DNA of 64,000 bases from Ruditapes philippinarum (taxonomy: Eukaryota). Of the stretch, positions 2,213-39,093 are shown piece by piece. The DNA is taken from positions 62,001 to 126,000 of the forward strand of contig NW_026852366.1 in assembly GCF_026571515.1 (NCBI RefSeq), given 5' to 3'. A program made the translations under genes and the position numbers. Every line of letters begins with the position of its first letter. Position 1 is the stretch's first letter. The notes beneath the pieces were generated by a model that saw only the letters and a program-made list of their open reading frames with translations, was not told the origin of the DNA and did not search any database.

Positions 2213-5200
2213 TCAGCATTTTGGAACGCGTAGCTCTCCCGCATTTGTTTTACCTTTACCTTTCTTCCCTTCTAGAGGCATATCTTTAATCTTCTCAACT
2301 AGGAACCTAAATAAAGACAAAAACAATTCAATGAGCACCATGTTCAAACGTAACAAGATGTATAGTTGCAATGCCATATGTGACGAAGATAGGATTAAAA
2401 TTATATATGAAAGGGAAAAATATAATGTTTGGTTGAAAAATTGCCGTTCTTTGCAAAATCTTTACTTAACCCTTAGTCCTTTTAGTGGCGACAGATTAAA
2501 CTCATGTGATCAGTGCAAACCCAACCAAGAAATCAGCGGCCAATTTGTGCCATTTGATAGTCAAAAATGTCTATTTTCAGTCAATATTTTTAATTTCGTC
2601 TGTATGGTTTTATCTCCGTATTAAGGCATGTTAAGGGTAAAAGAAAATCATAATATCATTAATTAAATATACGTTCTAAGCATAAAATGAGCACCCGCTG
2701 AACTTATATCACTTGCCGAATTATACATACCACCAGAAAGAAACTCAATATAATTATTATCGACCTTTTATGTCAGTGATTGACCTTTGATCTTGAACGT
2801 CACGTTCACGTTACATCTTGAATGTAACCTGGAAGAATGGTCGGATACCGCCATTATGTCACTTTTTATTATAATGGTAGCGCCAGAGTTAACAAACTTA
2901 CCTCACATCCGTGTCCTGCAAATCTTCAACATTGGTACACAACACCTCGATGAACCGGTTTTTAATCCGCTCTTTTATGTCTCTTTTTGACGAAGTCCCG
3001 TATACATCTTGTACAGCATCTGACAGCGTATATGAGTTTTTCTTCATAAAATTGAGAATCTTCCCCCATTTGGTTGGGTTTGAAGTGAAAGATTTTAATA
3101 TAAGGAGCGTTTCATCCCTGCCTACCACATTTACATCGGCTGCTGTGGTAATCTGTGGCTCTGGAGAAGTAGAAATCTCGCCTGTAAAGTATCGTTATAT
3201 CTTTAATATTCGAGTTCTAGAAGAAAGGTTCTAGAATAGACTCTTTAAGAGACCTCGAACATGTTCAAACACAAATCAAAAATGCATTCTAAAATGAGTT
3301 TAATGATTTCGATAACAGTCTGCCAATTAAGATTTCTTTAATTTAATGTAATCTTAAGGGGCAAAATTTTATTCTGTCAAATGATGTTTTTGATTTATTT
3401 CAAATAAATATACCCAACAAAATAGTCATAAATTTTCCTATATAAAAAAATGGATCATTAATTTGAGTAGTGGTATATGTAACAATATGCTTCTTTTTCT
3501 GACTACATTTTATTTAATATACACGTAGTGTGGGTTCGAATACAACCAAGGAGAATGAGGAGCTGTTATTTATGTATTCAGCCGATAATCTCTAAGATTT
3601 GAACTTATGTTCGTGCAATAAATTTTTTATCACCCCTCACTTTTTTCGTAATGGTAATTTCCCATAGGCCCCTGGGAGTTAATCTTACTGTAAATGTAAG
3701 TGCACCAGGTGAATTTTGTACTTATTACTTTTTAACAGTATAAAATCTGGTCACGTGGTCTATTTTCTAAAATAAAAAGAAATAAAATGGCCGCCATTTT
3801 CTTTCTTGATTCATGAATTCTTATGTTCGAAGTTAAACACGATAGGACACCTATAAAATTTAGTTCTTTCCACCCTAGAGTGCTTTTTGCGTATAAAATA
3901 TCTTTTTGTTGAATAGTCAAAAAGTAAACATCCGTTTTCAACAGAAGTAATTATAATTGTTATGCGAATAATAATGTGTCAAACTGGGACATGCAGACGA
4001 TTAAAGCATGCAACAAAGGATCATTTAACAATTTTAACCAGTAAAACTGACAAACACAGGATATCATTGTGTTATTTTGTAAATGCACTTTGTCAAAAAC
4101 CATGCGAAGAGAATATTCTGGATACAGAAGGATCATATTTCACAGATCATAACCGTATAAATGGGTTTGTGTTTTGTTTTCTAAATAAAACGCAGTTTAT
4201 TGTGTGTTTATCATTGGTAGATATCATCACTTGTATAAAGAATAAAAGAGAGAAAAAAAACTTCTCAAATATGCCTACAGTACACTTAAAACCTAAAAGG
4301 TAAGGATAGTTTAGATATTGTTACTCTTGGTTTATTTTGTTTAAATTTAGATTTTACTTGACAATTTTAGATCATCGCAGATTTTGTTCGAGGCTATGCC
4401 TCGGGTAACAGTATTTTCCTCGGGATGATAGTTTTACTGTTACCCACAAACCCATGTGTTATTTATGTTATGTCAGTTGGAAAATTATAAGAATTCTATA
4501 CTGTCACTGATGCTACTATCATTTACATCACCAAAACTACAACAACTACTACTGCCACCACAACCATCAATACTACTATTTTCACTATTACATAGCCACT
4601 TCTCCTGCCACCGCCATCCCCCACCACACACCACCACCAACATTACCACCACGACTTATACTTAAGTAACAACAATCTACTTTTACTAACATTTCCCCTT
4701 ATTTTCCTCCCCTCCCTTATGAACGACTTCCACCTATCGCTGTCGCTGAAAACAAAGCATAACATTTAATTTTTATACTTTACTTCTTTCACTTACACTT
4801 TGATTAATACTTTTACTACCACAACTAACACAACCACTATCTATATAATCTATATTGTTACTTACCCATTTACTGTCACTTATTCGACTACTTCTACAAC
4901 CACTTCAACAACCACCACCATCACTACCACAACCACCACTATATCTACTGTTACTAACCGGTATCCTCTTCAGTCACTTCTACGACTCTTTCTACGACCA
5001 CTACCACCACCACCACCACCACAACTATCACTAACACTTCCAGTACCACCACTACTACTACTACAACTACTACCACCACCACTACCACTACTAGTGCTAG
5101 TACACTACGTTGAACTACTATTTTTTCTATCACCATTTGCAGAAAAAAACAACGAAAACAATATTATTATATTAATGACGATGATGATGATGATGATAGT

Positions 5201-7971
5201 GATGATGCTGATGATGATGATGTTGATGCTGATGATGAAATAGTAGAAGACGATAAAGTTGATTTTGTTGTTGATGATGAAGACCACGATGATGATGGTT
5301 ACGAAAGAAAAGAACAATAAGAAGATTTTGCTGCTACTGATGGTGATGATGATGATAATGCTTAAAAAATAAATAAGATGAAATACTTGACGATCCTTGA
5401 AAATCGTTGTAGAAACGTCCCAAAGTGGTAAGTTCTGAACGGTCGGGTTTTAATAGACTTGCAGATGTGGTAACAAATCCAGACGTCTTTATTCTTGCTG
5501 AATACCAGGAATATCTACAACCGAAGATGTAAATGTATAGTAATAATGGTTATATCATTTGCGTAGTTGGTATACTTTAAAATATGATTAATTCAATATT
5601 ATATATACTGACATTTTTTTAATTGGTTTAAAATAAATGAATACCGAATAAAATGACATGAGTATGTTTCTGTGTTTAATACGAAGACACATCATATTTC
5701 TGTGTGATTGTTAGCCCAATCTAAACTAAAGACGCTTAAAAGCTTTTTTTTTTATTTCTTGGGGGTATTTTCTCACAACCCAAATAATTATATTGGAGAA
5801 ACAAAGTGAGCGAATAATCTGCGCTTTTGCAATCAAGTTAATGGTCCTGACCTACATGAAATATTTGGTAAACAAGTCTTAAAAAAATCAATTCTGTCAT
5901 GTATAAACGCCTCAGTTTAGTCAACTAAATATGCTTACAAAAATGTGTGTTTATATTCGATTCACTATAACATATCATCACTGTCAATAAGTTTCCCGAA
6001 TATTAAAAAAAAATGTTAAAAAGTAATAACTGTAACATAAATATTGTTGGAAAACTAAATCAAAATTCATCTTCTTGATATAATATAACGAAAACGGAAG
6101 TTAGTGTTCAGTTTAAAAAGTTTTGATGAATTGAGCAGTAACTGTGAAATAGCGGTAACAATATAAATTATTAGGAACATTTTGTATACCTGAAAACAAA
6201 ATCGGCGTCCTCCAGCGCTGGTAGTATTTGTTCCATAAAATCTAATTGTTCCATCTCATATGTTGTTTGGCCACAAGCAAACTCAGTGAGCCAAATCTTT
6301 CGATTGTATCTTTTGAAGAGTTGCCACAAGTAATTCATCACTTTACCAGGGTCACACCAATACGTGTGTGCCGCTAGGTAATCCACTCTACAATCTTTGC
6401 AAAGCTCGAAAAACTTATCGAACCATTCAAAGTCGTTGACATTACACTCATAACCGCAAGGGGCAGCTGAAGGGCTCACAAGCTTTCTTCCATCAGAATT
6501 CTTTTCAACTTCTTTCCACGCAGCAGCAGCTTTCTCAGGTGACATATTTGATTGTTTCTTGTGATTTGGCTCATTGAAACCAAGGACAAACTGTTGTGAC
6601 TCGTCCGGAAGGTTAATCACAGTATCTCTCCAATATCCCCAAACCATGGGGACATAGTTATACAAATAAGTATCAACGCTGGATGTACAAATGTCGTTCT
6701 TGTGGAAATAGTCAAGATTCATTCTGAAGTCATACCTGTGTAAAGATACCTTCTATTTATATATGAAAAAACTAAAATTTCGATTTAAAAAAATCAAGTT
6801 TGTTCATATTTAGTTATTTATCCATCAGTTAAATCAATGATATCTTGAACGTATTGATACTGTATCTCAAAGAAATTTGATAAATTTTCATAAAAGTTCA
6901 TATGAAACAAACATGGCGTAGTCCGAATCGCCTCCTAAATGAAAAAAATGATGTCACTCAAAAGGGAAGATTCTAGATAAGTTCTTAGCTTGAATACGAT
7001 TTAAAGAAATCGTTGCTGATTAAAAAGTCATAGTCGGAAACTATATCCGCCATATTTGCTAATATGCTTCTTATTCGCATGAATTTTTATATTTTTGTTT
7101 AACGAGAACTTAATATGAATTTCCGTTTATTATTTTCAAATTGTTGTTCAGAGTAACTGACGCTTTTTTAGGTACCCCCCCCCCCCAAAAAAAAAGCTGT
7201 TATCATTCACATATAACCATGGTATTTTGTTTCATTGGTTATTTTTCTCATGTTACTGTTCATAGAAAATTTGCTGTAGAATTTAAATGTATTTTAAAAA
7301 AAAAATCACATACACGTGCTGCTTTTGCGATTCTGTAAAAATGGCACTGCATAGCCGTACTTTAATTTTGACGTGACGTCATTTGCGTTAAACAAATATA
7401 GCGTTTACAGGCGCGAAATGCTAACGTTATCATATAGGCGCGTCATTTTTTTCTACTTCAAACGGTATTTATATTTGGCATGTGATAAATAGAGGATTCA
7501 AGAATTCGTGAAAGTTTATTACCGAATTTATTGAACTCGTTTAATAAAATAATAATTTACTCGCCAGAGGCTTGCATAATATATATTTTTATCCAACTCG
7601 CTCAATTAATTCAGTATTTGTTATCCCAGGAAAACGGATTAAGCAAATGATTGGATATATATTTTGATTAAGACATACATCCCTTTGTACACAAATCTTC
7701 AAAAATATGTTCGGTCCCTCAATGTCAAAAATTAAAAACTTAGTTAAGCCCATAACGTACAAATTAAAAACAAATATAAGTACTGACTTTTATTTACATA
7801 CGTTTTACAAATAAATAAAAAGACTTACCACCAATTAATGTTGTCTAAAACTTTAAAATCATCGCATTCATAGCTGTCAGCCCAATGTACAACTCCTTTT
7901 TTCACTGACCCTTTGACGGTACAGGCCAAAGCGACAAAAACAAGACCACAGTTCCATACCACTTGCATCAT
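2213..7971 (-). CDS. Secreted GH128 beta-1,3-glucanase-like protein, paralogue 1 (~396 aa; signal peptide + GH128 + short linker + helical C-terminal domain)
   Basis: Exons 7829-7971, 6190-6735, 5387-5514, 2902-3181, 2213-2306; all GT-AG and phase-consistent (total 1191 nt). Starts MMQVVWNCGLVFVALACTVKGSVKKGVVHW. Carries the GH128/clan GH-A motifs YVPMVWG, VLGFNEPN (acid/base Glu), LVSPS, DYLAAHTY, KIWLTEFA (nucleophile Glu), RYSWYS. Ends ...GELRVPKC*. AATAAA on the - strand at 2139-2144. The exon 3 donor (gtattt) is weak but sits at the same position as in the paralogues. Confidence 0.88.
4490..5360. repeat. Low-complexity trinucleotide tracts (ACC/ACT)n then (GAT)n in intron 3 of GH128-1
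   Basis: Degenerate microsatellites that generate the spurious poly-T/P/V/M/I ORFs in the track. Confidence 0.85.
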
Positions 7972-18039: not shown

Positions 18040-18900
18040 TAATATCCCGACAAACATTTTGTTAGGCTTTTATCTCATCATTATAAAGCATATCTATCGA
18101 ATATTTTAAGAAATTACTTTTACATACTCCTGATACACATTTTGGAATGTATTTAGAATATTTGTTTTTGAATTTCTTTACAAACTCATGTTGGAAAGTA
18201 GCAATTCTATCATTTTGAAACGTATATATGCTATCTATCATTTTAGAACGCAGACATTCCATCATTTTGCAACTTCTTTATGCTATCACTTTGGAACGTA
18301 TTTATGCTATCATTTTAGAATGTAGTCATTCTATCATTTTGAAACATATATATGCTTTCATTTTGGAATGTATTTACACTATCATTTGAAAACTATTCAT
18401 TTTATCATTTTGGAACGCATTTATGCTATCATTTTTTGAAATGGTAATCGTTTTCGACCTTATTGATAATATCATTTGAGAACTTATTTACAATAACATT
18501 TTGAAACTTATTGATAATATCATTTTGGAACTTATCTAGTGTAATAATATCATTTTGGAATTTATTTACACTATTATTTGGGATCGTATATACACCACTA
18601 TTTATAAACGTAGTTATGCTGTCATTTTGGAATGCAGTCATTTTATCGGTTTAGAATGAATTTACATTAAAAATATGCCATTTTTGAACGTTAAAATCAT
18701 AATATATGATGAAAAAAACTCATTATTACATAATCCCAATACATATTTTGGAACATATTACACTTATTTCTGCCATTTTGGAACGTTTATGTCTTATAGT
18801 CCAAATACATATTTTGGAACATATTTACACTTCTGTCTGTCAATTTTGAACGTATTAATCTTATTGTCCCGGAACACATGTTGGAACGCAAAGCTCTTCA
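18040..18900 (-). repeat. Degenerate ~24-nt tandem repeat array immediately 3' of GH128-2
   Basis: Units resemble cattttggaacgtatttatgctat on the + strand. The first unit overlaps the last codons of the gene. Confidence 0.8.
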
Positions 18901-21900
18901 GGTTTATCGCACTCTCCCACTCGTAACTTTTGTATCCGTTCAACCTCTTTGCTTGAAAATAAAATATACATTGATATGAATAAAACATACATTTATCAAC
19001 GAAGTCGCATTTTGCTATCATGTCTATGGTGCGTTTTTATTGTAAGTCACAGACATAGACAAAATTGAATCTTATTTGCTATAGCTTTGCCTCATGTCTC
19101 ATATTCAGTCTAAAACATACATTTTGAAACAAATAATCTTCACCAATGAGACACAATCTTTGCGAAGGTTCTGTTTTGAAACGTACAAATTAAAGGTCAG
19201 CAGATACAAAATAAAATACATACAAAAATACATGGTATTTTGTCACTTTTGGCGGCCACATTGGCGACCATCTTGAATTTTTGTACTTTTGCCCGGACTT
19301 CGTAACTTAAGAAATGGGTTTTTAGAAACTACAAACAATATGCTTTATAATGGCAATGTTCTTTTTTGTGATACAGTGAACTGCAATAAAAAACAGCCAT
19401 TTTTTCATAAATTACAGAGTTAAACCAAATCCGACGTTTATCAAATAAACTCAATTCCCCCATTTCTATAGAGACTTTTCGGCCTTAGACTAATGCTTTT
19501 CACATTGACTTCCGGTAAATTATAAGTCTACTTGCAATCCATTGTAAAGTAATTGCCGCACTAATTACGATTAATACGTATGCTACTTCATGCCAAACAT
19601 ACGCAAGAAATATTTTGTAACATAAAGTAATACGAATTGCTTTATGTTTCATTATGTAAATTTGTTAATAAGATATATTTTAGAGAATTTGTTTGGAATG
19701 ATAGCATAAATATAATTATGTTTTTCCATATCTGTATTCCCTATAGGTAGTTCTTTCCTTAATCCGTGCGATACACTATTACCAGGGTGGATGATCACGT
19801 TACATATTTGTATAAGTAAATTTGGGTCAACGCTAATGGCCGCGCGCATCGCTTAAATTTATGTTTTCTTATTTAGGTCATATCTTTCAAAATTAAAATA
19901 GCATATATTTAAATACCAAATTCCAGTCAAATTTTTGCCGTTCCGATGTAGCTCTCTTTTTCGGCCATAGGCCGTCTGTTTTCGGTTGGACTTCCTGTAA
20001 AATGTACAGGGAATAACTTAATATAATGTTAGAATTTCAGTGATCATTTAAAAATTACAATCTGAAATCTCGGAATCCGATTGGCCATTGTAAAATTAGT
20101 AAACTAACATAAACGATGTTTCGGACATGGTATACGCGTCAAATTTTTAATTGGTCTATAGGAGGTCTGGAAACGATCTATTTACATTGATAACATATAT
20201 AAGCTCTTTCACTATCAAGTGTTATTTCAGATACATAAATTCGAGATGATACAGTAAAATAAATTCCAATAAAAGGCTCAATATCATAATCTGTATGATA
20301 TAGTGGCTGATTTGGAACGTTATTCTGCGTCGTGTTGGTGCTAGCGACGACAGGACAGGGCGCCAAACGACGCGTTGTTGGATTTTCTTTGTGTTGTCCT
20401 GTCGCTAACGATGTATGTCAACGACGCGTTGTCGTGCGGCGTGTTGTCGCGATGTCACATTGTCGCTCAGTTCAAATCAAAGGATTGGATTATAAGTCAG
20501 GCGACAGGGCGACATCGCGACAACGCGCCGCACAAGAACGCGCCGTTTGACGTACATCGTTAGCGACAGGATGACAAGACGAAAATCCGACAACGCGCCA
20601 GTTGGCGCTTTGTCATGTTGTCGCTAGCGACAAGACGAAAAAGCGATAACGAATCAGGTTGCGTTGTCGTTATCGACAATGCAATGCACAATGCACGAAA
20701 TCAGCTACCATAGTATGATATCCTCAGATTCGATATGCAAATAAGCAAGTTTTAATTCGGCCAAGCATCTTATGTAAGGATGATACGTCTTGTTATTTCC
20801 GTTATGCTTGCAGAAGTTTTTCTATGCGATCGGCATTGTCAATATTTGCCTGGAGCATGGTATATGTTTATTTTTCAAATATTGAAAGATGCAACGAACA
20901 AAAAGCAAATACTTTTTTAATCAGGGGCACGGTCATTAGCGGTGACCCAATGGTAACCTTATAACTCTCTCAAATTACTGAACATTGATGCTATACTTAG
21001 GTTATATCTAACAATGAATCGAACAGATTCAACACGATTGAGGAATAATGTCAATGATTCCTCTTGTTTTATATACAGGTTTAACTAGAGCAAGTCGAAA
21101 TATATAAAAATATATTAATATTCACCTGATGGCACTGTTTTGTATTGTATTAACATCGCAGCACATGATTGCAGTAAACGCCTGTTGTATCCTGTCCATG
21201 AGAACCGTCTCTGATGCTGTCTGGTAAAGTGCTTGTACATTTTTAGACAATGTATCTGACTGCCGTTTTACATATTTAAGCATTTTGCTCAGGTCAGATG
21301 GATTGGTTTTGTATGACTGCAGTATTAGTAGCGTCTCTTCTGTACTGAATTCAGTGCTCCCGCAGTTGTTATTATTGTTGTTTGTGGTAGTGGTTACCTG
21401 TGCAGGTGTGGAAGTGGTAGTTACACTTGGTTCATTTGTGATAACTGCTGTACTTGGTTCATTTGTAATGACTGTTACTGTAATGAAAAGTTTACATGTT
21501 GCATTTCCATCTAGCACAATTACAGCTAGCGCGCGCTCAAACAATGTAATTAAAAGCATGGAGATTAGGCAAAGTGTCATGAGTATATGTCCCGTTCCAC
21601 ACTTTTAGATCAAATATATTATATTGACTTTAATTCTCTAAAGAGCAATTAACTGTGCCGTCAGTGGACAAGTACATTGGAACCAAGTATAATACACGTC
21701 CTGTTGCACAGATACCTCTTGCGTGCCCACTGGGTGACCAGATGGAACCGTCGGACATTTGGACAGTCTAATCAGACTCTATTGCGACTGTTGATTAATT
21801 CTAACATTTTATGTAATAGTCGCTCACCTTCGTACGTGAAAGTCTCAGAGTCAAGTACAAGTATGATAGGTTCATAACAAGTCGGTTCCATGTATTTATC

Positions 21901-24900
21901 GTAAAGAAACTTCTTTGGTAACTGTTTATAGTAAATGTACTTGTAAATAAGCGCAAATTAAATATTATTTTAGTCCTATCCCGCCCCATGTAGAATAGAA
22001 ATGGCTATATTGCAGCTTTAGTGTTACGATTACAAATCCTGATGTTTCGCAAACACATTGCTATATCTTTTAAAACAGCGGGAATACAATACTTTTGTGA
22101 GAATGAGACAAGACAGAACTTGTGTTTTCGAAGTTATTTTAAAAATAAACCTTGAGAATTGATAAAAATGATCATCCTGCATTTATTTCCCTTCCTGAAC
22201 TAAGCTCGCTTTAAGGGTTACAAATCTAACTGAGCTTGTAGGCAAGCAGTCATGTTGGTATTTTTCCTTAAAATAAAGTCTCACAAAGGAAAACGAAAAA
22301 ATTAACAAAAGGATTATTCCAATATTACCCGAAATTAATCGCTATTTGCTGATTCATCAGGGTTCGTAAGATGTTTATCATGTAATTAGCCCAATAACCC
22401 ACAATTTGTTTTGTGTGTTAATGTAAGACTTACCCGCCTCTCCTTGATAATTATTGTAGAAGCGACCAAGTTCAGTAAGTTCAGATCGATCTTGCGCCAG
22501 AAGACTGGCGGCTTTGGTGATGAATCCTGAGACTGTTTTTAGTCTAGCACTGTACCATGCATATCTACGAATGAAAAACAAAACACAACATAATCGACAA
22601 AATTACCCTTTTATTCAAAACATTATTCGAATGAAAAGTTCGATAACACCATATAACGGCTGTAATAGGCTATTCGTAAACCAAATGATTCAGGTGCACT
22701 AGTCCCTAACTGCCATATGTTCGAACTCATCCATGACCCCTGGGTCATTTCATGTGAGGAGCTACGTAATTACGGAAGGCCGAAAGCAGTATACTTGTTT
22801 ATGGTTGGCAAAATCCATGAACGAATATTTGAAATATTTCACCACCTATAAGCTTTATAATTATAATTCTCAAATGGTAAGGGGAGTTCTACGTGAATTC
22901 CAAACAAAATGATATCATATTAAAATTAATACATTTAAATCACCTATGAGAATACTATTCATTTGAAATACATTCAAATAACCTCTAATTAAAGCATTTG
23001 AGTAGATAATTTTAAAATTATATATTTTGTCTCCGGTATATTTACCTAAATATGAATTCAGCCGCTTCTAATTGTGGTAACATGTCTTGCATAAAATACA
23101 ATTGTTCAAGCTCATATGGCGATTCTTTGCACGCAAACTCTGTCAGCCAAATTTTTCGTCCGTATCTCAGATACAAGCTCTCCAAATACGCCATTGTTTT
23201 GACCGCGTCACACCAATATGTGTGAGTAGCGAGGTAATCCACTCGGCAGTTTATACAGAGTTCGAAAAACTTGTCAAACCATTCGATTTCAGTGCTTCTA
23301 CAGTTCTCGCCACACTCTGCCGCAGATGGGCTCACTAGTGGTTTCCCTTTGGAATTCTTTTCAACTTCTATCCATGCTGCGGCTGCTTTTTCAGGTGACA
23401 TATTGGACTGCGCTCCGTGATTTGGTTCATTGAAACCGAGGACGAATTCAGCGGCATCGTCAATTATGATGACGGTGTCACTCCAGTATCCCCAAACCAT
23501 GGGAACATAGTTGTATTTGTAGTTATCGATTGAAGAAACACAAATATTGTTCTCGTGGAAATAACTTAGATTCATTCTGAAGTCAAACCTGTAAAAAAGT
23601 TAACAAACAAATCATCTTTAAATGTTTACTGTCATATTTTTATTTTACTAAACAATCAAAGGTCTGTTCCTTGTTTAATTATTGTTGATTTTGTTATTTG
23701 TACAACAATATTAAGGGAGAAATTTGAAGAACGTAAAACATCATCGGTTTTAAGTACGGGAGCTGAGTATTATCTTTGAAAGAAATTATCTTAGTCTTTG
23801 TTCCAATTACGTAAATTATTTCATTTGTGTAAGTACATTCATTTTTTTATATTTTATTTTCCAACCTTATATCTTCGTGGTAGGTATATATAGTAGATGA
23901 TAAAAAACGTAATAAAATATGACATGAAAACACAATAATTTAAAATATGGTTCCGGGCAAATTTAGAAAAAGAAGAAAAAGAAAAACATAACAACATAAC
24001 CAAAACCACTCGAAACAACCAAAATTCAGTTTGATTGTATATTTTATTATTATTATATTCATATTTTATTGTTTAAAATGAAGACCGTAAGTATAACGAG
24101 TGCAAAAAGTCGTAAATACAGAAATGCTTTTGATCTTTAATCTGATGTCCTTTATATCCCGCAAGCAGGAAAATTATCTACATTTCTTAACATCCATATT
24201 TATGAAAGCCTAGACACATATCCGTATTTTATCTTTTTTATTATTTTTTTTTCTTTTTCGTTTAACCAGTCATAATTTCAAGTTTAATCATTAAAAATAA
24301 TAAACTGTGTTAAAAAAAGAGACAAAAGTTCAAAAAAGTTATCTGTTTTATTATTGATGTGCGTTGATGAAAAATGACAGTCTTGACCTTTTATATTACA
24401 TAAATCAGCACATAAATCAAAAGAATATCAATAAATGAGCCGCGTCATGACAAAACCAACATAATGGGTTAGCGACCAGCATGGATCCAGACCAGCCTGC
24501 GCATCCGCGCAGTCTGATCAGGATCCATGCTGTTCGCTATCAGTTTCTTTACTTGCTATAGGGTGTGTAAGCGAACAGCATGGATCCTGATCAGACTGCG
24601 CGGATGCGCAGGCTGGTCTGGATCCATGCTGGTCGCAAACCCACTATGTTGGTTTTGTCATGACACGGCTCAAATAATTTACGGTCAACTGTGTCTTCTT
24701 TGATCTTCATTTTATGAAAAAAGCGGTTATCGAATCAAAATGTTTGAAATATTTGATATTTATCAATGAATGAAAAGTAGTTTAACATACCTGACATGTT
24801 GTTTTTTTTATTTGATTAAATCATCAAATAAATCTATTACATAATTGAAGGCAAAAAACAAATAAGATATAAACTAAAGCACTTTATTTCACCGATTTTT

Positions 24901-27900: not shown

Positions 27901-29138
27901 AGAATATTTTCTCTAATTCAACCATTTTAAAAGCGCTAAATATTACTATAACTCATTCTACTTTTCACATGTTAAATATTGTTCTATGGGCCTTGGATCC
28001 TGGGAAAGGTTTAATTAGAGTATACTAAAAGTAAAGTATTCTTATCTAAAAACAACCCAAATGTGACTCATTTCTATTTTCTGTAATTTATGATTGAAAT
28101 GCATTTGATGATGACGTTACATCTAGTAAGTTAATTCTAAACAACACTAGATCTCCTTTGCTCATAGACACATTTAAATATATACTACACACCCGATCAC
28201 GCTTCAGATGTAGCCTTCATAATCATGATCTTTGAGTTCATTGAAAATAAAATACGTGTGGAGATGTTGGTCATACACTGCTTTTAAATAAAGTTTCAAA
28301 TCAAATTTCCTCGGTGTAGAAAAAGTGTTGTTGGTACAAAAAACATAACCAAAAGTGTAATGCAGATGCCGACAACGAAGCACAGTGACTATAAAATTCG
28401 AGCCTAAAACTAGACAAAATTAAATATTGACAAACTAGAACGAATGAAAGAAATATTATTTTTAATAAATATGAATGGTTGAAATAAATGCTATTTTTTT
28501 TAATAATTATGATAATTTTCTAACTAGTTCGGAATTCAATAGTGTACTGATTTTTTTTTATCTCCGATGAAAGTTCAAATTTCTCGTTAATAAAAATAGA
28601 AAATAAATTATTTTTCAAGCTAATTATAAGCAAGCATAAATGTATACATATATTTTTTATTAATTTACTCATTACATTTATCTCGTTATTTGATTTAGTT
28701 ATTTATAACATCATTAATTTTTTTCACCTCTCCTAAATTCAATGTCAGAGCCAAATGATACAATTAGTATGCCGAAGTTAAACAAATGAGAATAGAAAAA
28801 AAGAGCAGTAAGATAAATAAGAAATAAAAAACGAAAAAGAAAAGTCAAGAATACGAAAAAAACCAGAAGAAACGAGGAAAAGAACCGCAAATAAAAGAAC
28901 AGACAGCGATAGTGTGAGAGACAAATAAAAAGAAAGAACGTTCAAAAAGGGAACAAATCAAGGAAAGTGAAGATGAAGAAAATGAAAAATTGTAAAACAC
29001 TCACCACCATGTCATGTTATTCAATACTTTAAAATCATCGCACAAGTAATCGTCGGCCCAGTGTACCACGCCTTTTTTAACTGACCCGTCCACAAGAACT
29101 TCAAGCAATACAAAACAATACAACGGTGTCATCACCAT
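18861..29138 (-). CDS. Secreted GH128 beta-1,3-glucanase-like protein, paralogue 2 (~416 aa)
   Basis: Exons 29005-29138, 23046-23588, 22434-22564, 21126-21477, 18861-18951; GT-AG, same phases as paralogue 1 (total 1251 nt). Starts MVMTPLYCFVLLEVLVDGSVKKGVVHW. FNEPN and WLTEF intact; Thr-rich linker. Last exon SKEVERIQKLRVGECDKPEELCVPTCVPGQ* was identified by similarity to the last exons of the paralogues. Confidence 0.88.
20301..20712. mobile_element. GC-rich foldback MITE with 8-bp target site duplication (hAT-like TSD length), intron 4 of GH128-2
   Basis: gtatgata at 20293-20300 and 20713-20720. Imperfect terminal inverted repeats (tagtggctgattt / aaatcagctaccata). The interior is a long imperfect palindrome centred near 20485. 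Confidence 0.75.
24436..24672. mobile_element. Near-perfect palindromic MITE (~100-bp arms), intron 1 of GH128-2
   Basis: tgagccgcgtcatgacaaaaccaacataatgggtt... is mirrored by ...cccactatgttggttttgtcatgacacggctca, with a ~30-nt spacer. Confidence 0.9.
25660..26728 (+). repeat. Recent ~370-bp direct duplication (25660-26041 and 26364-26728) in intron 1 of GH128-2
   Basis: Both copies run from taccgctcggtacaggtaggttataaattt to gctgccgttgtaggcagatact, with few substitutions and one ~15-nt indel. Confidence 0.9.
27683..27782. mobile_element. Internally deleted copy of the 24436-24672 palindromic MITE
   Basis: Same arms (gtcatgacaaaaccaacataatgggtttgcgaccagcat ... atgctggtcgcaaacccattatgttggttttgtc) with the centre removed. 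Confidence 0.88.
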
Positions 29139-31189: not shown

Positions 31190-31770
31190 CGCTTTGAAAC
31201 ATTTGAAATAAACGTATAATATGAAATGCATCCTGTTGTCCCGACAAACATTTTAAAACGTATTTATCCTTTTATTTTAGAGCATAAAATAATATCCTAT
31301 TGCAAGGACATCTATCAAAGAATGATTCATTCTTTTTGTTTAATACCTTGAAATTAATTGTTTAATTCCTTTGTACAATTACACCTTTTTTTATTAAAAC
31401 GTATCTATCCGTTAGTTTTAGAACTTGAAATATATCCTTTTGTTCCGATACACATCTAGGAATTCATTAATTCTTTCATTTTGGAACTTAGAATATAATT
31501 ATATCACATTGTCTCGATATACATTTTAGAACGTATTTATCCTTTCATTTTAGAACATCAAAACTATCCTTTTGTCCCGATACACATTTAAGAACGTTAT
31601 ACTTTCATTTTGAAAATGTTTATCTTGATGTCCCGATACATATTTTAGATTGTAGCAATCCATTTATTTTACAACTGTCCTGATATTTATTCTACAAGGA
31701 CTTTATGTTTTCAGTTTAGAAAGTAAAATTATCTTATTGTCACGATACACATTTTGGAACGTACAGCTTT
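31190..31770 (-). repeat. Degenerate tandem repeat array 3' of GH128-3, related to the array behind GH128-2
   Basis: Alternating units tgtcccgatacacattttagaacg and tatcctttcattttagaac. The first unit overlaps the terminal codons VPKCVS*. Confidence 0.75.
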
Positions 31771-34700
31771 CCAGTTTTCTTGCTCTTTTCCAAAGGCATC
31801 TTCCGAATACGCTTGATTAGTTTCCTTAAAATAAATAAATATATTAAATAAATAAATAAGTTCAAACCGATAATGCTTTAAAAATCAAACCAATATTTCG
31901 TTTATAATAATGTATACTCGAATATGTGCTTAGGGTGGTCTTCGAATCACGATGTAATATAGGTTGCAGTTTATATCAATTTAGGTACCCAGTGGCAGTT
32001 TTCAACAATAAAAAACTATCATCAAATGCCACATTCCCAATTTATAAAGTGCTTTTAACACATGTCCAGGAAAGCAAGTAAAATATTGCAAAACTAAAAT
32101 ATCTATTTTTAGAAAGTATTCACCTGATTGCTCTGCTTTGTATTGTCTTCAAATCACAGCATATTATTGCAGTGAAAGCCATTTCTATTCTGTCTATGAG
32201 ATATGATTTCGATGGTGTCTTGTAAAGTGATTTTACCGCTTCTGACAGTTTAGCGGATCGTCGCTTTACATATCTAAGCATTTTTCTTAAGACGGTCGGA
32301 TTGGACTGGTAGGACTGTAGTACTAATATAGTCTCTTCTGCACTGAATTTAGTGCTTTCGCAGACATTGTTGTTGTATGTGGTAGTTGTAACTTGTACAG
32401 GCGTAGTTGTGGTAACTACACTTGGTGTACTTGTGGTTACTTCTGCTAAAATAAGAAACGGTGGAATATTAAAACAAACATTTCATGCCAAAGCGCATGC
32501 GCGCATGTACGCAAGCAAATTCATGGTTAAAATAATTTAAAAAAGATGTTAAAAGGAAAATTTAAGTTAGACATAAGTTATTAAATTGAATGTGAATTAA
32601 CTTTTAAAAATACATGTATAACACCTACCGATTTTGCAAATCAGACGTTCAGGTTTTAGAATTTAGATAAAGATTTAATTGAAAAACACAATTGCCGTAG
32701 AGGCTAACAAAGAGACCCCAGGGTACTTTTATCATAAACTTTTTAAGTTTTCTTTAAGAGTAACAAACATTACTGAGCTTGTGTGCGAGCCACCATATTG
32801 CTTTCTTGTTCTCTTTAACTCAAGTTGTGACATCTCAAAAACAAAATTCACCCTTTCACGGAACAAAGTTGTACGAAAATAAGTATGATGAGAGTTTGCG
32901 ACATTAACGATTTACTGTACTACCTGAAATTCAACTATTCATTAGGGTTAAGCAATATATTCTTGCCTTTGATAGACACTATTCCCGAAATAGATGTTTA
33001 CTTTATTATGATACGTACTTGTCTCCCCTTGATAGTTATTGTAGAGGCGACCAAGTTCAGTAAGTTCAGATCGATCTTTCTTCAGAAGGCTTGCGGCTGT
33101 GGTGATGAATCCGGACTTTGTCAGCCTAGCCCTGTACCAAGCATATCTACGAACAAATNNNNNNNNNNNNNNNNNNNNNNNNNNNNNNNNNNNNNNNNNN
33201 NNNNNNNNNNNNNNNNNNNNNNNNNNNNNNNNNNNNNNNNNNNNNNNNNNNNNNNNNNNNNNNNNNNNNNNNNNNNNNNNNNNNNNNNNNNNNNACAATT
33301 CATGTCTATTTCCTTTTTTTCGAACATTTTACAAATGAGAGGTCGGTAATACCCTCTTTTTTTAAATATTGTTCAATTGAGAGGTCGGTAAGACAATCTT
33401 AACAGTTGCCATAGGTCACCCGTGCATCAAGTGATTAAGATAGCTTAGTTTGAAGCACTTGCCCCTCGACGCTGTGAGTTCGACCCCCTGTCAGGAACGT
33501 TGGTTTGTGTCGCGTGAAGACATAAACTGGACAGACGACTGATGCTGTGACGCTCTAACATTGTTTAAATTGTTCATGTCGGAAAGAAAATGCAGGGAGA
33601 AACAATTTGCATCTATCTCTATCTGTTACGAAGTCTGAACTGTTTGACGAGATAAATGCAAACAAAATAATTACATTTGTCAAATTAATTCATATCATGT
33701 CTAAGAAATAAATATTTTACATTTGAGAAAAATGATCTTAAGATAGCATGTTAGATGCTTCGGTAATTGTTTTACCTATATATGTAGTCAGCAGCTTCAA
33801 GTCGCGGTAACATGTCTTTCATATAATTCAGTTGTTCCAACTCATACGGCGATTCGCCGCAAGCAAACTCTGTCAGCCAAATTTTTCGCCCGTATCTCTT
33901 GAACAAACTCTCCAAATACGTCATTGTTTTGTTTGCATTACACCAATACGTGTGTGTTGCGAGGTAATCAACTCGGCAGTCTTTGCAGAGTTCGAAGAAC
34001 TTGTCAAACCATTCGATTTCAGTACTTCTACAGTTCTTTCCACACACTGCCGCTGATGGGCTCACTAGTGGTTTCCCTTTAGAATGCTTTTCTACCTCTT
34101 TCCATGCTGCAGCCGCTTTTTCTGGCGACATATTGGATTGCTCTACGTGATTTGGCTCATTGAAACCGAGGACGAATTCAGCCGCATCGTCAATAAAGAT
34201 CTTCGTGTCACTCCAGTATCCCCAAACCATGGGGACATAGTTGTGTTTGTAGTTATCGATTGATGACTTGCAAATATTTTTCTCGTGGAAATAATCTAGA
34301 CTCATTCTAAAGTCAAACCTACAAAATTACAAAAAATCTTTAAAAACATTATAATTTTATATGTATACATTCATTGCGGTATACATGTATTATATTGATT
34401 TAAAAATAGTATAATCTTTAAGCACGACTCTACATTTCCGTTTACATTCAGAAATAGAATGCTTATAATTATCATATAGTCTTACTTTATTTTTGTCTCA
34501 TTCGTATACATACATTTTTGTTACATCACAAAAAGCATGCATACGGTCATTCTAATTAAGAATTTGTTGTTGTTCTTATTGAATAAGTTAGAATAATTAT
34601 CTGTCGCACAATTTTTTTCAATGTTATATTTTGTAATNNNNNNNNNNNNNNNNNNNNNNNNNNNNNNNNNNNNNNNNNNNNNNNNNNNNNNNNNNNNNNN

Positions 34701-36867
34701 NNNNNNNNNNNNNNNNNNNNNNNNNNNNNNNNNNNNNNNNNNNNNNNNNNNNNNNNNNNNNNNNNNNNNNNNNNNNNNNNNNNNNNNNNNNNNNNNNNNN
34801 CATTTTTATGATAATTCTCATTAATTAATTACATAATTAGTGTTCTTTTTTTTGCCGTTATATTACTGAACAGAATGTATTTTATTATTCTGTTACATTC
34901 TGTTCTGTCGTTATATTAATCAAAATAAACCCATGGGGGAATATAATAATTGAATAAACAAATAAAAAACACTGTAAAAATAGTACGGGAATAAGTAGTA
35001 ATTTTGGTGACAAAATGTTTTTGGTACGTAGATTAATGTAATTTAGATAGCTTTACTATCTTAGATCTTCGTGGCAAGTTTATGTTTTACAAATAACGAC
35101 AATACTAAAATGCTGTTACAATGTACTTAAAGGAGCATGCCTCCAGGTTTTCTTGAAATTTCATAAATTCCCAATTTCATATTCATTAATTCACAATTTT
35201 ATCTTCACGAATTCACGATTTCAACTTCTTTAATTCAACTTCGTGATTTCATGAAGTTAAAATCGTGAATTCATGAAATTGAAATCATGAATTCGTGAAT
35301 AAGTGAAGTGGAAATCGTGAATTCATGAAAATTTTAATTGAAATCTTGAATTCGTGAAAACGAATCGTGAATTAGTGAAAAGAATTGATGAAGGTGAAAT
35401 CGTGAAAACGAATTGTTTAATAAGAGAAGATGAAATCGGGAATTCGTGAAGTTGAAATGTTAACACCGATCTTTCGTACTGTGAAAGACCGGTGGAGACG
35501 TTTCAACTACCTAGATCCGTTAATTACACAGTTTTAACTTCGTGAATTCACGTTTTCAACATACCGAAATCACGAATTCATGGTTTTAACTTCATAAATT
35601 CACCTTCACGATCTCAGCTTCATAAATACAAATACATGTTTTGAACTTCAGAATTTCAATTTCACGAATTGAAGATTTCATCTTCACTTTACAATGTTAT
35701 AGTAAGTAATTAATGTATCATAGTGACATGTGTGGGATTTTAGCTTTTGGATATATATCTCTTATCATTATCCTCCATGTAAATTACAAACGTTGCATAT
35801 GATTACCACTTTAAAATGTCTTGACTATCAAAACAGCAAAAAGACGTTGTAACAAAATGTTTGGTTTTAGGCAAGATTGGAAGAAGTAAATAAAAACAAA
35901 AAGATCAAAGGAGAGGGAGACAAAAAACACACAACAACAACTTAATTTAGTTATCGATTATCTTTTATTATTTAAATGAACGTTATCTCAGAATTGCGGT
36001 GTCAAAAATTCGAAAGTTAAAAGATATATAAATACATTTTAAAGATAAAATGTTTTTGATCTTTAATTTGGCACTCTCAATAACGGACAAGCAAGGAATA
36101 TAATTTTATAAATGTTTCTTAACAGTTGACAGGTGAAATAGGAATATTAATGAACCTCTAGATATTATATAATTTTGATTTATTTTATCTTTCATTAATT
36201 TTTTCTTCGTTTTTGTCTTGTGTTAAGTCTGTCAAAATGCCGGTCTTAAATGATATAAAACCCTTATACTTTACACAGACGTTCACAGTGCCAGCCAGCA
36301 TAGCCCAGACTTGTAATCTCCACAGTGTGGGTTCGATTCCCGTGCTGGCCAACTAAAATTACTTGTCAGTCTTTCGGATGAGGTCCCGTGTTTAAGTGCT
36401 TAAACACTTGGCACGTTAAAGAACCAGGAGAAGCTTCAGGAATTGGGAATATTTTCTGTATCTTGCCCTATCCTCTAAAATCTAAAATGACTAATACACC
36501 TCTGGAGGACTCGCCCGTATGGGCAACCGGTGGCGAGTATAAAAAAACTCAAATACGTGCACAGACGTTCACAGGTTATTTTCGAATCACCCATCCTTTA
36601 ATGTTTGTTGTTTTTTTTAAGGGTAAATAAACTCGTTTTTAGAGGTCGACGAAAGGTGAAAATCGTGAAATTGGATACCACAGTTTGTTTAATCTATACC
36701 TCGGTCAATACATACAATTATACATAAATTGATACAATCAATGATAAATATAAATAAAACATCAATGTATAGTTCATTCACTCTCATCAATATTTTAAAT
36801 GTCTTAAAGCGGTTGGTGTACCATGGGCACATTATTAAATAAGTATTTGAAATATTGATAAAAACAA

Positions 36868-36899
<32 letters not shown>

Positions 36900-38994
36900 A
36901 ACTTAAAATAATAATGATCGTAAATAATTACGTAAATAATTAATATATTATACTTGTGTCACACACCACCCGTGACGCTGTTGGTACAGATATAACCCAT
37001 ATCACATTGGTATATTATTGACTTTAACGGGTGAAATATAAGGCATATCAGTGTTCGTTTTAATAAAGTGTTTGATTCAAATCGTAATATAAACCATTTA
37101 TTTAAGACACATTGTGCCCCAGAAAAGATTATTTTATTCATTAAAAAGGGTAAAAATAAGTTGTATGGCATGCTAATCACCTGAGGAAAGTAGCGTTGAA
37201 TTTAAAATTACTAATTTTGTTATTAAAGTAGTAAAATAGAGACAAAGTAGTATTTTGACTTCTATACAAAATACTGAATCACTATATTTTTACTAATTGT
37301 CAAAAAAGCAAAAGAAGCAAGATGTTTCAGTGACCAGCGAGTAACGTTTTTTGAAGCTATAGCAGGACAGCAGAATAAAAGGTTTTGAGAAATTATAATA
37401 AAAGCATTTCTGGGTTTTAATCGGCTTTTAAGTTATTGGAATTAATGAAATATAATCAAAATCGATAATTGTTGAGTATATCAATAAATAATAAAAATGT
37501 CTTGAAGACTAGTAATTGTTAGTTTATTGATTTTATAACTTAATGTCTTGATTCTAGTTCATTTATTTTTTGCGGGTTTTTACATATGTTACATATCGAC
37601 ATTCCAGCACATAGATGTCTGTTTGGTTTCATTTTTAGGATGAAATGTACCATCGACATTCGTGTTTGCTTCTTCCAATGAATACACTTATAAGAAGCAT
37701 ACACCAATTTCATGTCTATTTCATAGACAGGTGATCTTCATTTGGACGTTACTTCATTTTATTTTTAAATGATGGATTAATAATCAAAATTAATTGATAA
37801 TAATTATAATATTATAATTATTGAAATTGATAAAAAGGGTGATACAATAAGCATGATTATTTTTATTCAGACTGAGGTGTTCTTTAACACAGGCTTGACA
37901 TTTTTAGGCGAAAAAATATGCAAAACATCAATCATTTTCAAGTTAATTGTATGCAAAAACGAATTTTTGTACACGCTATTTTACAACCACATATTTTTAA
38001 ATACCAAACACCTCTTTCATTNNNNNNNNNNNNNNNNNNNNNNNNNNNNNNNNNNNNNNNNNNNNNNNNNNNNNNNNNNNNNNNNNNNNNNNNNNNNNNN
38101 NNNNNNNNNNNNNNNNNNNNNNNNNNNNNNNNNNNNNNNNNNNNNNNNNNNNNNNNNNNNNNNNNNNNNNNNNNNNNNNNNNNNNNNNNNNNNNNNNNNN
38201 NNNNNNNNNNNNNNNNNNNNNNNNNNNNNNNNNNNNNNNNNNNNNNTCCAATCATTTTTCATTCTCTTAAGTTAATCATTAAAGGTTGTTGGTTAACAAA
38301 AAAGTTTTCCTCACACTGATTAATTCATACATCATAAAGGCTTACCTCATTTAATTAAAACGATGACCTCTCCTTACCTTCTACCTTAATATGATCATTT
38401 TCAAGAAAAATTACTTTATAATGGAACTTTCAAATTATATATAATTATATAAAATTAAATAAAAGAACATTACCATAATTTAGTCCGTATTTCCTTTTAT
38501 ATAAATCATATAAAGGGAACGGAACTTGATAAAGATGATGATATAAAAAGGAGGAAAAGAAAAAAAGATGATGATGAAAAACATGAGGAAAAAGGAATAC
38601 ATAACGGTAAGGACATAATTCTGTAGATGAATAAAGAAAAAGAAAAGAAGAAGATAATTAGATAAAGAAAATGGGAGAAAAGATAAATAGGAAGAAGAAG
38701 ACGACACAGAGAAAAATAATTAGCAATAGAAATAGAAGAACAACAAATAGAGTAACAACAACAACAATAACAACATGACGAAAAACATGAGGACGGAAAC
38801 TAAGAAAGAAATTAGACTAAACAAATTAAAGAGAAACAATAACTACAAGACAAAAACAATACTTACCACCATGTCATGTTATTCAATATTTCAAAATCAT
38901 CACACATATAACTATCTGCCCAGTGTACCACGCCCTTTTTGCTTGACCCCTCCACAAGAACTACCAGCAATACAATACCGAACAATGATTTCAT
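31740..38994 (-). CDS. Secreted GH128 beta-1,3-glucanase-like protein, paralogue 3 (~401 aa)
   Basis: Exons 38867-38994, 33776-34318, 33019-33146, 32124-32445 (NAGNAG acceptor), 31740-31824; GT-AG, conserved phases (total 1206 nt). Starts MKSLFGIVLLVVLVEGSSKKGVVHW. FNEPN and WLTEF intact. Ends RKLIKRIRKMPLEKSKKTGKLYVPKCVS*. Three N-gaps lie in its introns. Confidence 0.88.
33159..33294. other. Assembly gap (other gaps: 34638-34800, 38022-38246, 52781-52923)
   Basis: Runs of N. Confidence 1.
33415..33545 (+). mobile_element. Degenerate tRNA-derived SINE 5' part in intron 2 of GH128-3 (a remnant lies at the equivalent site in GH128-2, ~22700-22860)
   Basis: cacttgcccctcgacgctgtgagttcgaccc resembles the head of the SINE at ~46165. 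22700-22860 has tgttcgaactc...ttcatgtgagga. Confidence 0.5.
35150..35690. repeat. Degenerate short-unit repeat (ttcacgaattcacgatttc-like) in alternating orientations, probably a foldback-type element
   Basis: Many ttcacga / tcgtgaa / gaattc units that switch strand near 35240 and 35550. Confidence 0.7.
36289..36559 (+). mobile_element. tRNA-derived SINE with V-domain-like core and 15-bp TSD, intron 1 of GH128-3
   Basis: TSD cacagacgttcacag at 36274-36288 and 36560-36574. Box B gggttcgattccc. Core gtctttcggatgag..gtcccgtgt..gcacgttaaagaacc resembles V-SINE central domains. Confidence 0.8.
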
Positions 38995-39093
38995 CGTCAA
39001 CATTTTTTAATGTCTTTTAATGTTTACGTCAAGAATCAGAAAAAAAACAACAAGAGACAAACATTCACTAATTATAAAACACAATCAGTCCCC

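Follow-up and report, generated by a model that had tools for sequence, protein, structure and literature searches.

A Myb/SANT-like tail domain of probable PIF/Harbinger origin in the GH128 enzymes of venerid clams

Introduction

Transposition of PIF/Harbinger elements depends on two element-encoded proteins, a transposase and a Myb-like accessory protein that binds the element ends and imports the transposase, and an accessory protein of this kind is generally present across the superfamily (PMC9392472; PMC2836001). Host genes domesticated from the Myb-like component include NAIF1 and MSANTD1-4 as well as the plant genes HDP2/ALP2, whose products act as DNA- or protein-binding factors in chromatin and transcription (PMC9392472; PMC5339849; PMC7282668). 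Here, we analyse a stretch of 64,000 nucleotides from the clam Ruditapes philippinarum (RefSeq assembly GCF_026571515.1, contig NW_026852366.1, positions 62,001 to 126,000), referred to as the window and numbered from its first letter. It contains three minus-strand paralogues of glycoside hydrolase family GH128, termed A, B and C, and the additional domain at the C-terminal end of their coding sequence is probably derived from a Harbinger accessory protein.

The GH128 tail is homologous to the accessory protein (ORF1) of PIF/Harbinger over about 84 residues, including an exon boundary and its phase, and shares with it a succession of helices that bear aromatic residues at intervals (F/Y, W, Y, F); the source family is abundant and appears recently active in the clam genome. 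In contrast to ORF1, the GH128 copies lie outside a transposon, with no inverted repeat or transposase in the vicinity. Three parts of ORF1, namely the LQRRRK stretch, the acidic/PQ region and the RRRRKRPLAD...LRxLG motif, are missing from them, cysteines have been added, and their position is C-terminal to a mucin-like linker, an enzyme and a predicted signal peptide. As in NAIF1, MSANTD1-4 and HDP2/ALP2, a host gene has kept the Myb-like domain under purifying selection after decay of the element; unlike these nuclear factors, the clam genes carry the domain alone, on a hydrolase that is predicted to be secreted.

Another point of comparison is TSNARE1, a fusion with a SNARE/syntaxin part that is cytosolic or involved in membrane trafficking. 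It resembles the clam genes in being chimeric, with a Harbinger Myb-like domain joined to an unrelated, non-nuclear domain, whereas the clam domain is C-terminal, would enter the secretory pathway and is likely disulfide-stabilised. A Harbinger origin of TSNARE1 has been suggested (PMC9392472). On the enzyme side, modular GH128 proteins with a carbohydrate-binding module (CBM) are known, such as GH128 combined with CBM6 (PMC10956234). The clam proteins likewise join a GH128 core to a non-catalytic module, which differs in being a small all-helical Myb/SANT-like bundle of putative transposon origin, known from sequence and a model, and in corresponding to no known CBM. Whereas the Harbinger Myb-like domestications described so far are DNA- or protein-binding factors (PMC9392472), the domain is here spliced to a carbohydrate-active enzyme that is probably secreted. 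The clam fusion would represent a clean, datable exon capture by which a nuclear fold entered the secretory pathway, and a concrete test of how far the Myb/SANT scaffold can be repurposed. Its origin would also explain an unannotated region in the RefSeq proteins of commercially important clams, for which current gene models within one cluster disagree on whether the paralogues carry the domain. In the literature, we found no earlier description of GH128 in bivalves or molluscs, or of Harbinger elements in bivalves, that bears on such a fusion.

Results and discussion

The GH128 tail is homologous to the accessory protein of a Harbinger element

All three window genes share a five-exon layout. 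In these genes and in a fourth paralogue, which lies on the same contig (C853) 4.3 kb before the window begins, two downstream exons encode a Thr/Ser/Pro-rich linker followed by a helical region of about 105 residues:

21126..21477, minus strand: B exon 4, linker (about 21347-21477) and Myb/SANT-like domain (about 21126-21346); acceptor cag at 21478-21480, donor AG/GTGAAT (the slash marks the exon boundary, here and below); profile match 1.5e-33 (locus L003)
18861..18951, minus strand: B exon 5, helix continuation (S)KEVERIQKL and Cys-rich tail ...GECDKPEELCVPTCVPGQ, then a TAA stop; aligned with A and C
2902..3181, minus strand: A exon 4, linker and Myb/SANT-like domain with the Trp retained; corresponds to residues 272-366 of XP_060605768.1 (P0183)
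2213..2306, minus strand: A exon 5, FLVEKIKDMPLEGKKGKGKTNAGELRVPKC and stop
32124..32445, minus strand: C exon 4, linker and Myb/SANT-like domain; profile match 6.5e-31 (locus L005)
31740..31824, minus strand: C exon 5, KLIKRIRKMPLEKSKKTGKLYVPKCVS and stop; aligned with A and B
C853:57684-57932, minus strand: domain exon of the fourth paralogue, from the genome profile search (locus L038, C853:52001-62000)

The exon-4 translations of A, B and C can be aligned with no gap inside the alignment; their identity is 39-60%, and the 23 columns that do not vary match the motif that an earlier note on this DNA had assigned to exons 4-5 of all three paralogues. Exon 5 contributes about 28-31 residues with the common pattern I..L.VP.C, ending in L.VP.C. 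The splice phases agree as well: the exon-3 donors of A, B and C are in phase 1 (A/GTATTT, G/GTAAGT and A/GTACGT), as are the exon-4 acceptors, and the exon-4 donors (AG/GT) are in phase 2. An all-helical prediction, the conservation of the region and the absence of a Pfam match to a CBM uphold the view that the Thr/Ser/Pro linker is followed by a helical C-terminal module that is not a beta-sandwich.

A phmmer search with B exon 4 against 1.8e9 proteins returned seven matches, all from clams. They comprised near-identical clam fragments and short open reading frames (ORFs) of the form RRRK-x-FSKEETLLILRAY-HPS-W-I-K...LY...KQLKDR..KF, a spacing that corresponds to that of Myb/SANT domains; two of these ORFs gave sub-threshold matches to PF00249. 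A six-frame profile search of the 1.41-Gb genome detected at least 55 copies of the domain exon. Four of them, those of A, B, C and the fourth paralogue, lie on the contig of the window; the others are scattered, many with stop codons. When the contexts of the non-GH128 copies were inspected over 10 kb, these copies were found head-to-head with an ORF of 348-370 residues that combines DDE_Tnp_4 (PF13359; 7e-21 and 3.5e-22) with HTH_Tnp_4 (PF13613) and is thus identified by its domains as a PIF/Harbinger transposase; each is then followed by a further exon ending in RRRRKRPLADIIRENQ...LRxLG..SD. A transposase homologue lies within 1.5 kb in 23 of the 26 best non-GH128 loci and in none of the four GH128 loci.

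Alignment of three copies on different contigs, which revealed element ends that a simple inverted-repeat scan had missed, delimited a common segment of 2.75 kb with 96-98% identity, whose ends are formed by inverted TAGAGATGTACG:

L032:4121-6878: first copy of the 2.75-kb Harbinger element
L037:4040-6792: second copy
L036, about 4004-6745: third copy

The segment holds a transposase gene and a Myb-like gene in divergent orientation, and its ends are flanked by TAA/TTA-like triplets. It looks like a compact PIF/Harbinger element that was recently active, given that its copies are 96-98% identical, and the gene homologous to the GH128 tail is, by its sequence and position, the accessory Myb-like gene of the element.

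The relationship between the two sides is firm. A comparison of four GH128 copies with twelve transposon copies by hhalign gave a probability of 99.3% and an E-value of 1.1e-20 over 77 ungapped columns. BLASTP aligned the A protein P0183 with the Harbinger accessory protein XP_060599910.1 (P0014) at 6e-15 (30% identity and 64% positives over 84 residues, ungapped), across the junction between exons 4 and 5 (DTDVR/FLVEKIKDM versus DSDIR/GVAMQIDAM), and the corresponding pair from Mercenaria, P0125 and P0016, at 6e-16. For B exon 5, the homologous part is the beginning of the exon that comes next in the Harbinger gene; the Harbinger exon that corresponds to GH128 exon 4 has a phase-1 acceptor and, at the matching residue, a phase-2 donor (AG/G). 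On the transposon side, homologues were found in Ruditapes, Mercenaria and Mactra as well as in the protobranch Solemya. The Harbinger proteins P0014, P0016 and P0024 contain the basic LQRRRK stretch and the C-terminal RRRRKRPLAD...LRxLG motif, both of which are absent from P0183, P0126 (the protein of the fourth paralogue), P0125 and the window exons 4-5. The domain, which the earlier note had considered unrecognisable and possibly new, is therefore better described as a diverged relative of the PIF/Harbinger accessory Myb/SANT-like domain.

Relationship to the Myb/SANT fold

Among the 26 members of the domain alignment, PF00249 was the only recurrent Pfam family; it matched eight of them, all on the transposon side, and one of these proteins, P0027, exceeded the curated cut-off (25.2 versus 24.4 bits). 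An AlphaFold (AF2) model of B exon 4 (21125-21370), computed from the 26-sequence alignment, reached a pLDDT of 89.6 and a pTM of 0.78, with helices at residues 10-22, 27-36, 43-51 and 54-69. A model based on the three paralogues alone had a pLDDT of 60 and was discarded. In a comparison of the 26-sequence model with the Protein Data Bank (PDB) by VIA-align, the best neighbour was the SANT domain of DMAP1 (Z 6.4; 63 residues, 3.5 A), followed by the Tip60 complex (5.7), R2R3-MYB, NgTRF and TRF1 (5.5), the SANT domain of MTA1 and ISWI (5.2), Zeste (5.1) and the GT-1 trihelix (5.0), with Cdc5, CoREST, Ada2, c-Myb and others further down; by our count, SANT, Myb and trihelix domains make up about 30 of the 50 best PDB neighbours. 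The spaced aromatic residues of this family, F/Y in helix 1, W in helix 2, then Y, and F/L in the last helix, are kept in the transposon copies, A, the fourth paralogue and Mercenaria, and the Trp is replaced by Leu in B and C.

The Myb/SANT fold of the modelled domain is well supported only when the structural neighbours, the Pfam matches and the transposon context are taken together. Because the window copies fall below the Pfam threshold, they are here called derived from the Myb/SANT-like family and are not filed as its members. A match to a known family, which speaks against the new module considered in the earlier note, has thus been reached by an indirect route, through the Harbinger accessory protein and the SANT/Myb structural neighbours, whereas the window copies themselves match no Pfam family.

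A single capture followed by rapid change

In a tree of the domain, the nine GH128-linked sequences (A, B and C of the window, P0126, three Mercenaria proteins and two contigs from the Logan collection) fall into a single clade (support 100/100) whose long stem measures 1.38 changes per site, which points to one capture followed by rapid change. Within this clade, B and C group with Mercenaria P0125. The matching intron position and splice phases indicate that an exon, the intron behind it and the start of the next exon were captured as genomic DNA rather than as a retrocopy. From the transposon to the enzyme would be the economical direction, because ordinary GH128 proteins are without the domain and the transposon-side homologues are taxonomically wider. 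Ordinary GH128 proteins of bivalves, gastropods and annelids comprise 260-300 residues (270-285 in bivalves), and the bivalve proteins P0040, P0041 and P0037 end directly after YNNFQG with no added domain.

We consider it likely that the GH128 tail is a transposon-derived Myb/SANT-like domain that was captured by an ancestor of the venerid GH128 genes and is used as a binding or targeting module. In this scenario, a Harbinger element would have lain downstream of the ancestral gene, which took up exon 2 of the accessory gene, the following intron and the start of exon 3. A new phase-1 donor just past the 'YxxFQG' end of GH128 would join the enzyme to the transposon exon's own phase-1 acceptor. 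After the capture, a Thr/Ser/Pro linker would have taken the place of the basic LQRRRK stretch, both the C-terminal RRRRKRPLAD...LRxLG motif and the long acidic/PQ tail would have disappeared, and a cysteine in helix 4 and another in a terminal P-x-C would have been gained. The fusion, which Mercenaria also carries, would then have spread by tandem duplication, leaving four copies on the contig.

The domain is under purifying selection, with dN/dS values of 0.42 (A versus the fourth paralogue) and 0.29 (B versus C), compared to 0.19 for the catalytic exon of B versus C. Given these values and the presence of the domain in RefSeq proteins of two clam genera, the tail is more than a product of chance. 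The cysteine counts of 2 (A), 6 (B) and 4 (C) agree with those reported in the earlier note. The helix-4 cysteine and the terminal P.C cysteine occur in five of five tabulated fused proteins (P0183, P0126, P0184, P0125 and P0124) and, as read from the sequences, also in P0127 and the window paralogues B and C; the C-terminus of P0132 is a different one. None of the transposon copies has a cysteine at either column. Two additional cysteines are common to B and C, and exon 5 of B contains another two. The suggestion that cysteines come in pairs is borne out for the helix-4 and terminal residues, which are kept together across the wider fused family, and the pattern would fit gain in pairs and a move into the oxidising secretory pathway.

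Evidence against the capture, and competing explanations

A number of observations weigh against a captured, functional Myb/SANT-like tail and bear on its alternatives. At the level of the fold, window A, B and C as well as P0183, P0125 and P0127 give no PF00249 match, and the window copies, searched exon by exon, yielded only noise against Pfam and PDB sequences (the window exons were searched one by one, the spliced forms being taken from database proteins only, namely P0183, P0126, P0125 and others). Pfam searches with P0183, P0125 and P0127 returned PF11790 as the sole match and left the tail unnamed, and neither the window exons nor the fused RefSeq proteins matched any known CBM family in Pfam, in line with the all-helical model. 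The VIA-align Z-scores of 5-6.4 are all below 8, a range that is common for helical models, Foldseek found no match of the AF2 model in the PDB (best E 1.6), and the ESM Atlas, queried with P0183, gave no usable neighbour. In addition, B and C are without the conserved Trp and most of the basic residues of the last helix. Lack of Pfam, PDB-sequence, Foldseek and ESM Atlas neighbours is what one would expect of a lineage-specific new fold unrelated to known families. This explanation is nevertheless very improbable in the face of the firm homology to the Harbinger accessory protein, the passage of P0027 over the Pfam Myb threshold and the dominance of SANT/Myb domains among the structural neighbours.

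Traces of the element itself are likewise missing at the locus: tblastn with two transposases found no match in the window, and there is no inverted repeat near the GH128 genes. Moreover, the tree is effectively unrooted, so that the direction in which the domain moved is deduced from taxonomic distribution and transposon biology. As the tree shows merely two sides of one branch, it would also accommodate the reverse event, in which a Harbinger element took its accessory exon from a GH128 gene. We regard such a transfer as hardly credible, since the transposon-side homologues reach the distant protobranch Solemya, whereas the fused GH128 proteins found came only from Ruditapes, Mercenaria and one Logan contig (P0124) distinct from both; furthermore, ordinary GH128 proteins have no such domain, and a Myb-like accessory protein is general in the superfamily (PMC9392472; PMC2836001).

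The remaining points concern expression. For A, the RefSeq protein XP_060605768.1 (396 residues) maps to exactly five window exons at 98-100% identity, and the domain is therefore part of the A protein at the level of the gene model. Fused RefSeq models also exist for the fourth paralogue (P0126) and for Mercenaria (P0125, P0127 and P0132, with 403, 393 and 379 residues), and fused ORFs of 391 and 402 residues are present on two contigs from Logan (1505 and 1635 nt), which therefore contain no introns. By contrast, the RefSeq model of C (P0034; 292 residues) continues for 22 codons beyond the donor of exon 3 (33019) and ends within intron 3, near 32951, and no RefSeq protein for B was found among the database matches. 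Four raw RNA runs contained no read on the domain of B (21038-21371) or on its exon 5 and no splice joints; reads were limited to exon 3 and some 200 nt of intron 3, at a depth of at most 2.5, so that B is nearly silent in these runs, and no indexed RNA run contains the B stretch. In C, a run of N at 33159-33294 abuts the exon-3 acceptor (region 32951-33328), and this assembly gap may have affected the automatic gene model. The domain-bearing isoforms of B and C are thus predicted ones. What had been described as a domain appended to all three genes is present as exons in A, B and C, but a fused transcript model exists for A only. Conversely, the possibility that transcripts end after exon 3 applies to the RefSeq model of C and to the few B reads, which extend into intron 3, but not to A.

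These data make it conceivable, at somewhat less than even chances, that B and C encode an enzyme of about 290 residues that ends in intron 3, with exons 4-5 serving as a rare alternative 3' end or decaying as a relic. The loss of the Trp and most basic last-helix residues in both genes, and the absence of any fused B- or C-type protein or transcript from the databases, fit this possibility. However, exons 4-5 of B and C are open and have intact donors and acceptors of matching phase, the B/C dN/dS of the domain is low, both genes group with a fused RefSeq model (P0125), and the RNA depth is too low to exclude a spliced form.

Proposed function of the tail

The RefSeq fused proteins have a hydrophobic N-terminus that resembles a signal peptide by inspection, which, together with the linker, points to a secreted enzyme. 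In such a setting, the tail would keep the hydrophobic core of the Myb domain with an altered surface, and the gained cysteines probably form a disulfide that staples the tail to the last helix (helix 4). Most likely, the domain acts as a non-catalytic binding or targeting module, whose ligand would be a partner protein, or a polyanion or surface polymer of a food particle, instead of the DNA ends of the element. It is tempting to go further and propose that the nuclear DNA-binding Myb/SANT domain of a transposon has become an extracellular, disulfide-stapled module of a digestive beta-1,3-glucanase, in effect a new all-helical carbohydrate- or polyanion-binding family that has long been maintained in venerid clams, although we hold this stronger version to be doubtful.

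Nucleic acid is also among the candidate ligands. The domain might still bind nucleic acid, in which case extracellular DNA of biofilms, of detritus or of lysed prey cells would serve as an anchor for the glucanase. In favour of this, its parent family binds transposon DNA (PMC9392472), the last helix has remained basic ('KxRIKKRF') and is accompanied by a tail rich in Lys and Arg in the A-type and Mercenaria copies, and the C-terminal regions of P0183, P0126 and P0125 have a pI of 9.3-10.0. Yet the domains of P0184 and P0124 are acidic or neutral and that of B is neutral, with net charges of -3 to +8 among the fused copies; the last-helix residues conserved in the transposons (S..K) are not retained, the stem branch is long, and SANT-type relatives often bind proteins instead of DNA. 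Taken together, we judge such a DNA tether to be unlikely.

Catalytic parts and layout of the cluster

The window consists of AT-rich animal DNA. The upstream exons of its three paralogues are assigned to GH128 by matches to PF11790 (2.2e-38 for B and 2.6e-42 for A; 2e-38 to 9e-49 overall):

29004..29138 (approximate limits), minus strand: B exon 1, signal-peptide exon; tblastn with P0034 and P0126
23045..23587, minus strand: B exon 2, GH128 catalytic core; PF11790 at 2.2e-38 and tblastn
22434..22575, minus strand: B exon 3, C-terminal part of GH128; tblastn, phase-1 donor G/GTAAGT at 22434/22433
5387..7971, minus strand: A exons 1-3, GH128 (about 7828-7971, 6183-6734 and 5387-5516); tblastn of P0183 at 99-100% identity, PF11790 at 2.6e-42
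33019..39003, minus strand: C exons 1-3, GH128 (about 38866-39003, 33775-34317 and 33019-33157); tblastn

Exons 2 and 3 form the GH128 part, in which the GFNEPNH and WLTEFAC motifs, the sites of the catalytic glutamates, are intact in A, B and C. The fourth paralogue has the same linker and domain, corresponds to LOC132758240 with the protein XP_060605779.1 (P0126; 394 residues) and is the nearest relative of window paralogue A. Enzymes of family GH128 are beta-1,3-glucanases (PMC10956234).

Other features of the window

The linker of B (21380-21477) contains a tandem duplication, VITNEPSTA / VITNEPSV, and a run of six Asn, and comprises about 50 residues compared to about 23 in A. Intron 4 of B includes a GC-rich repeat (20370-20703) that draws many partially matching RNA reads in all four runs, with a summed depth of up to about 17 (run X6) and loose ends at either border. 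A multi-copy element that is expressed seems to have inserted there, which would explain why this intron measures 2.2 kb, as opposed to 0.3-0.6 kb in A and C. Intron 3 of A (4432-5449) contains long low-complexity runs, rich in Thr and Pro when translated from the plus strand and in Val when translated from the minus strand, which are probably a non-coding simple repeat. Finally, the plus strand harbours two Thr/Ser-rich, mucin-like ORFs at 50542-51174 and 60953-61514, each followed by a hydrophobic segment; they belong to tandem receptor-like genes and are unrelated to the GH128 tail.

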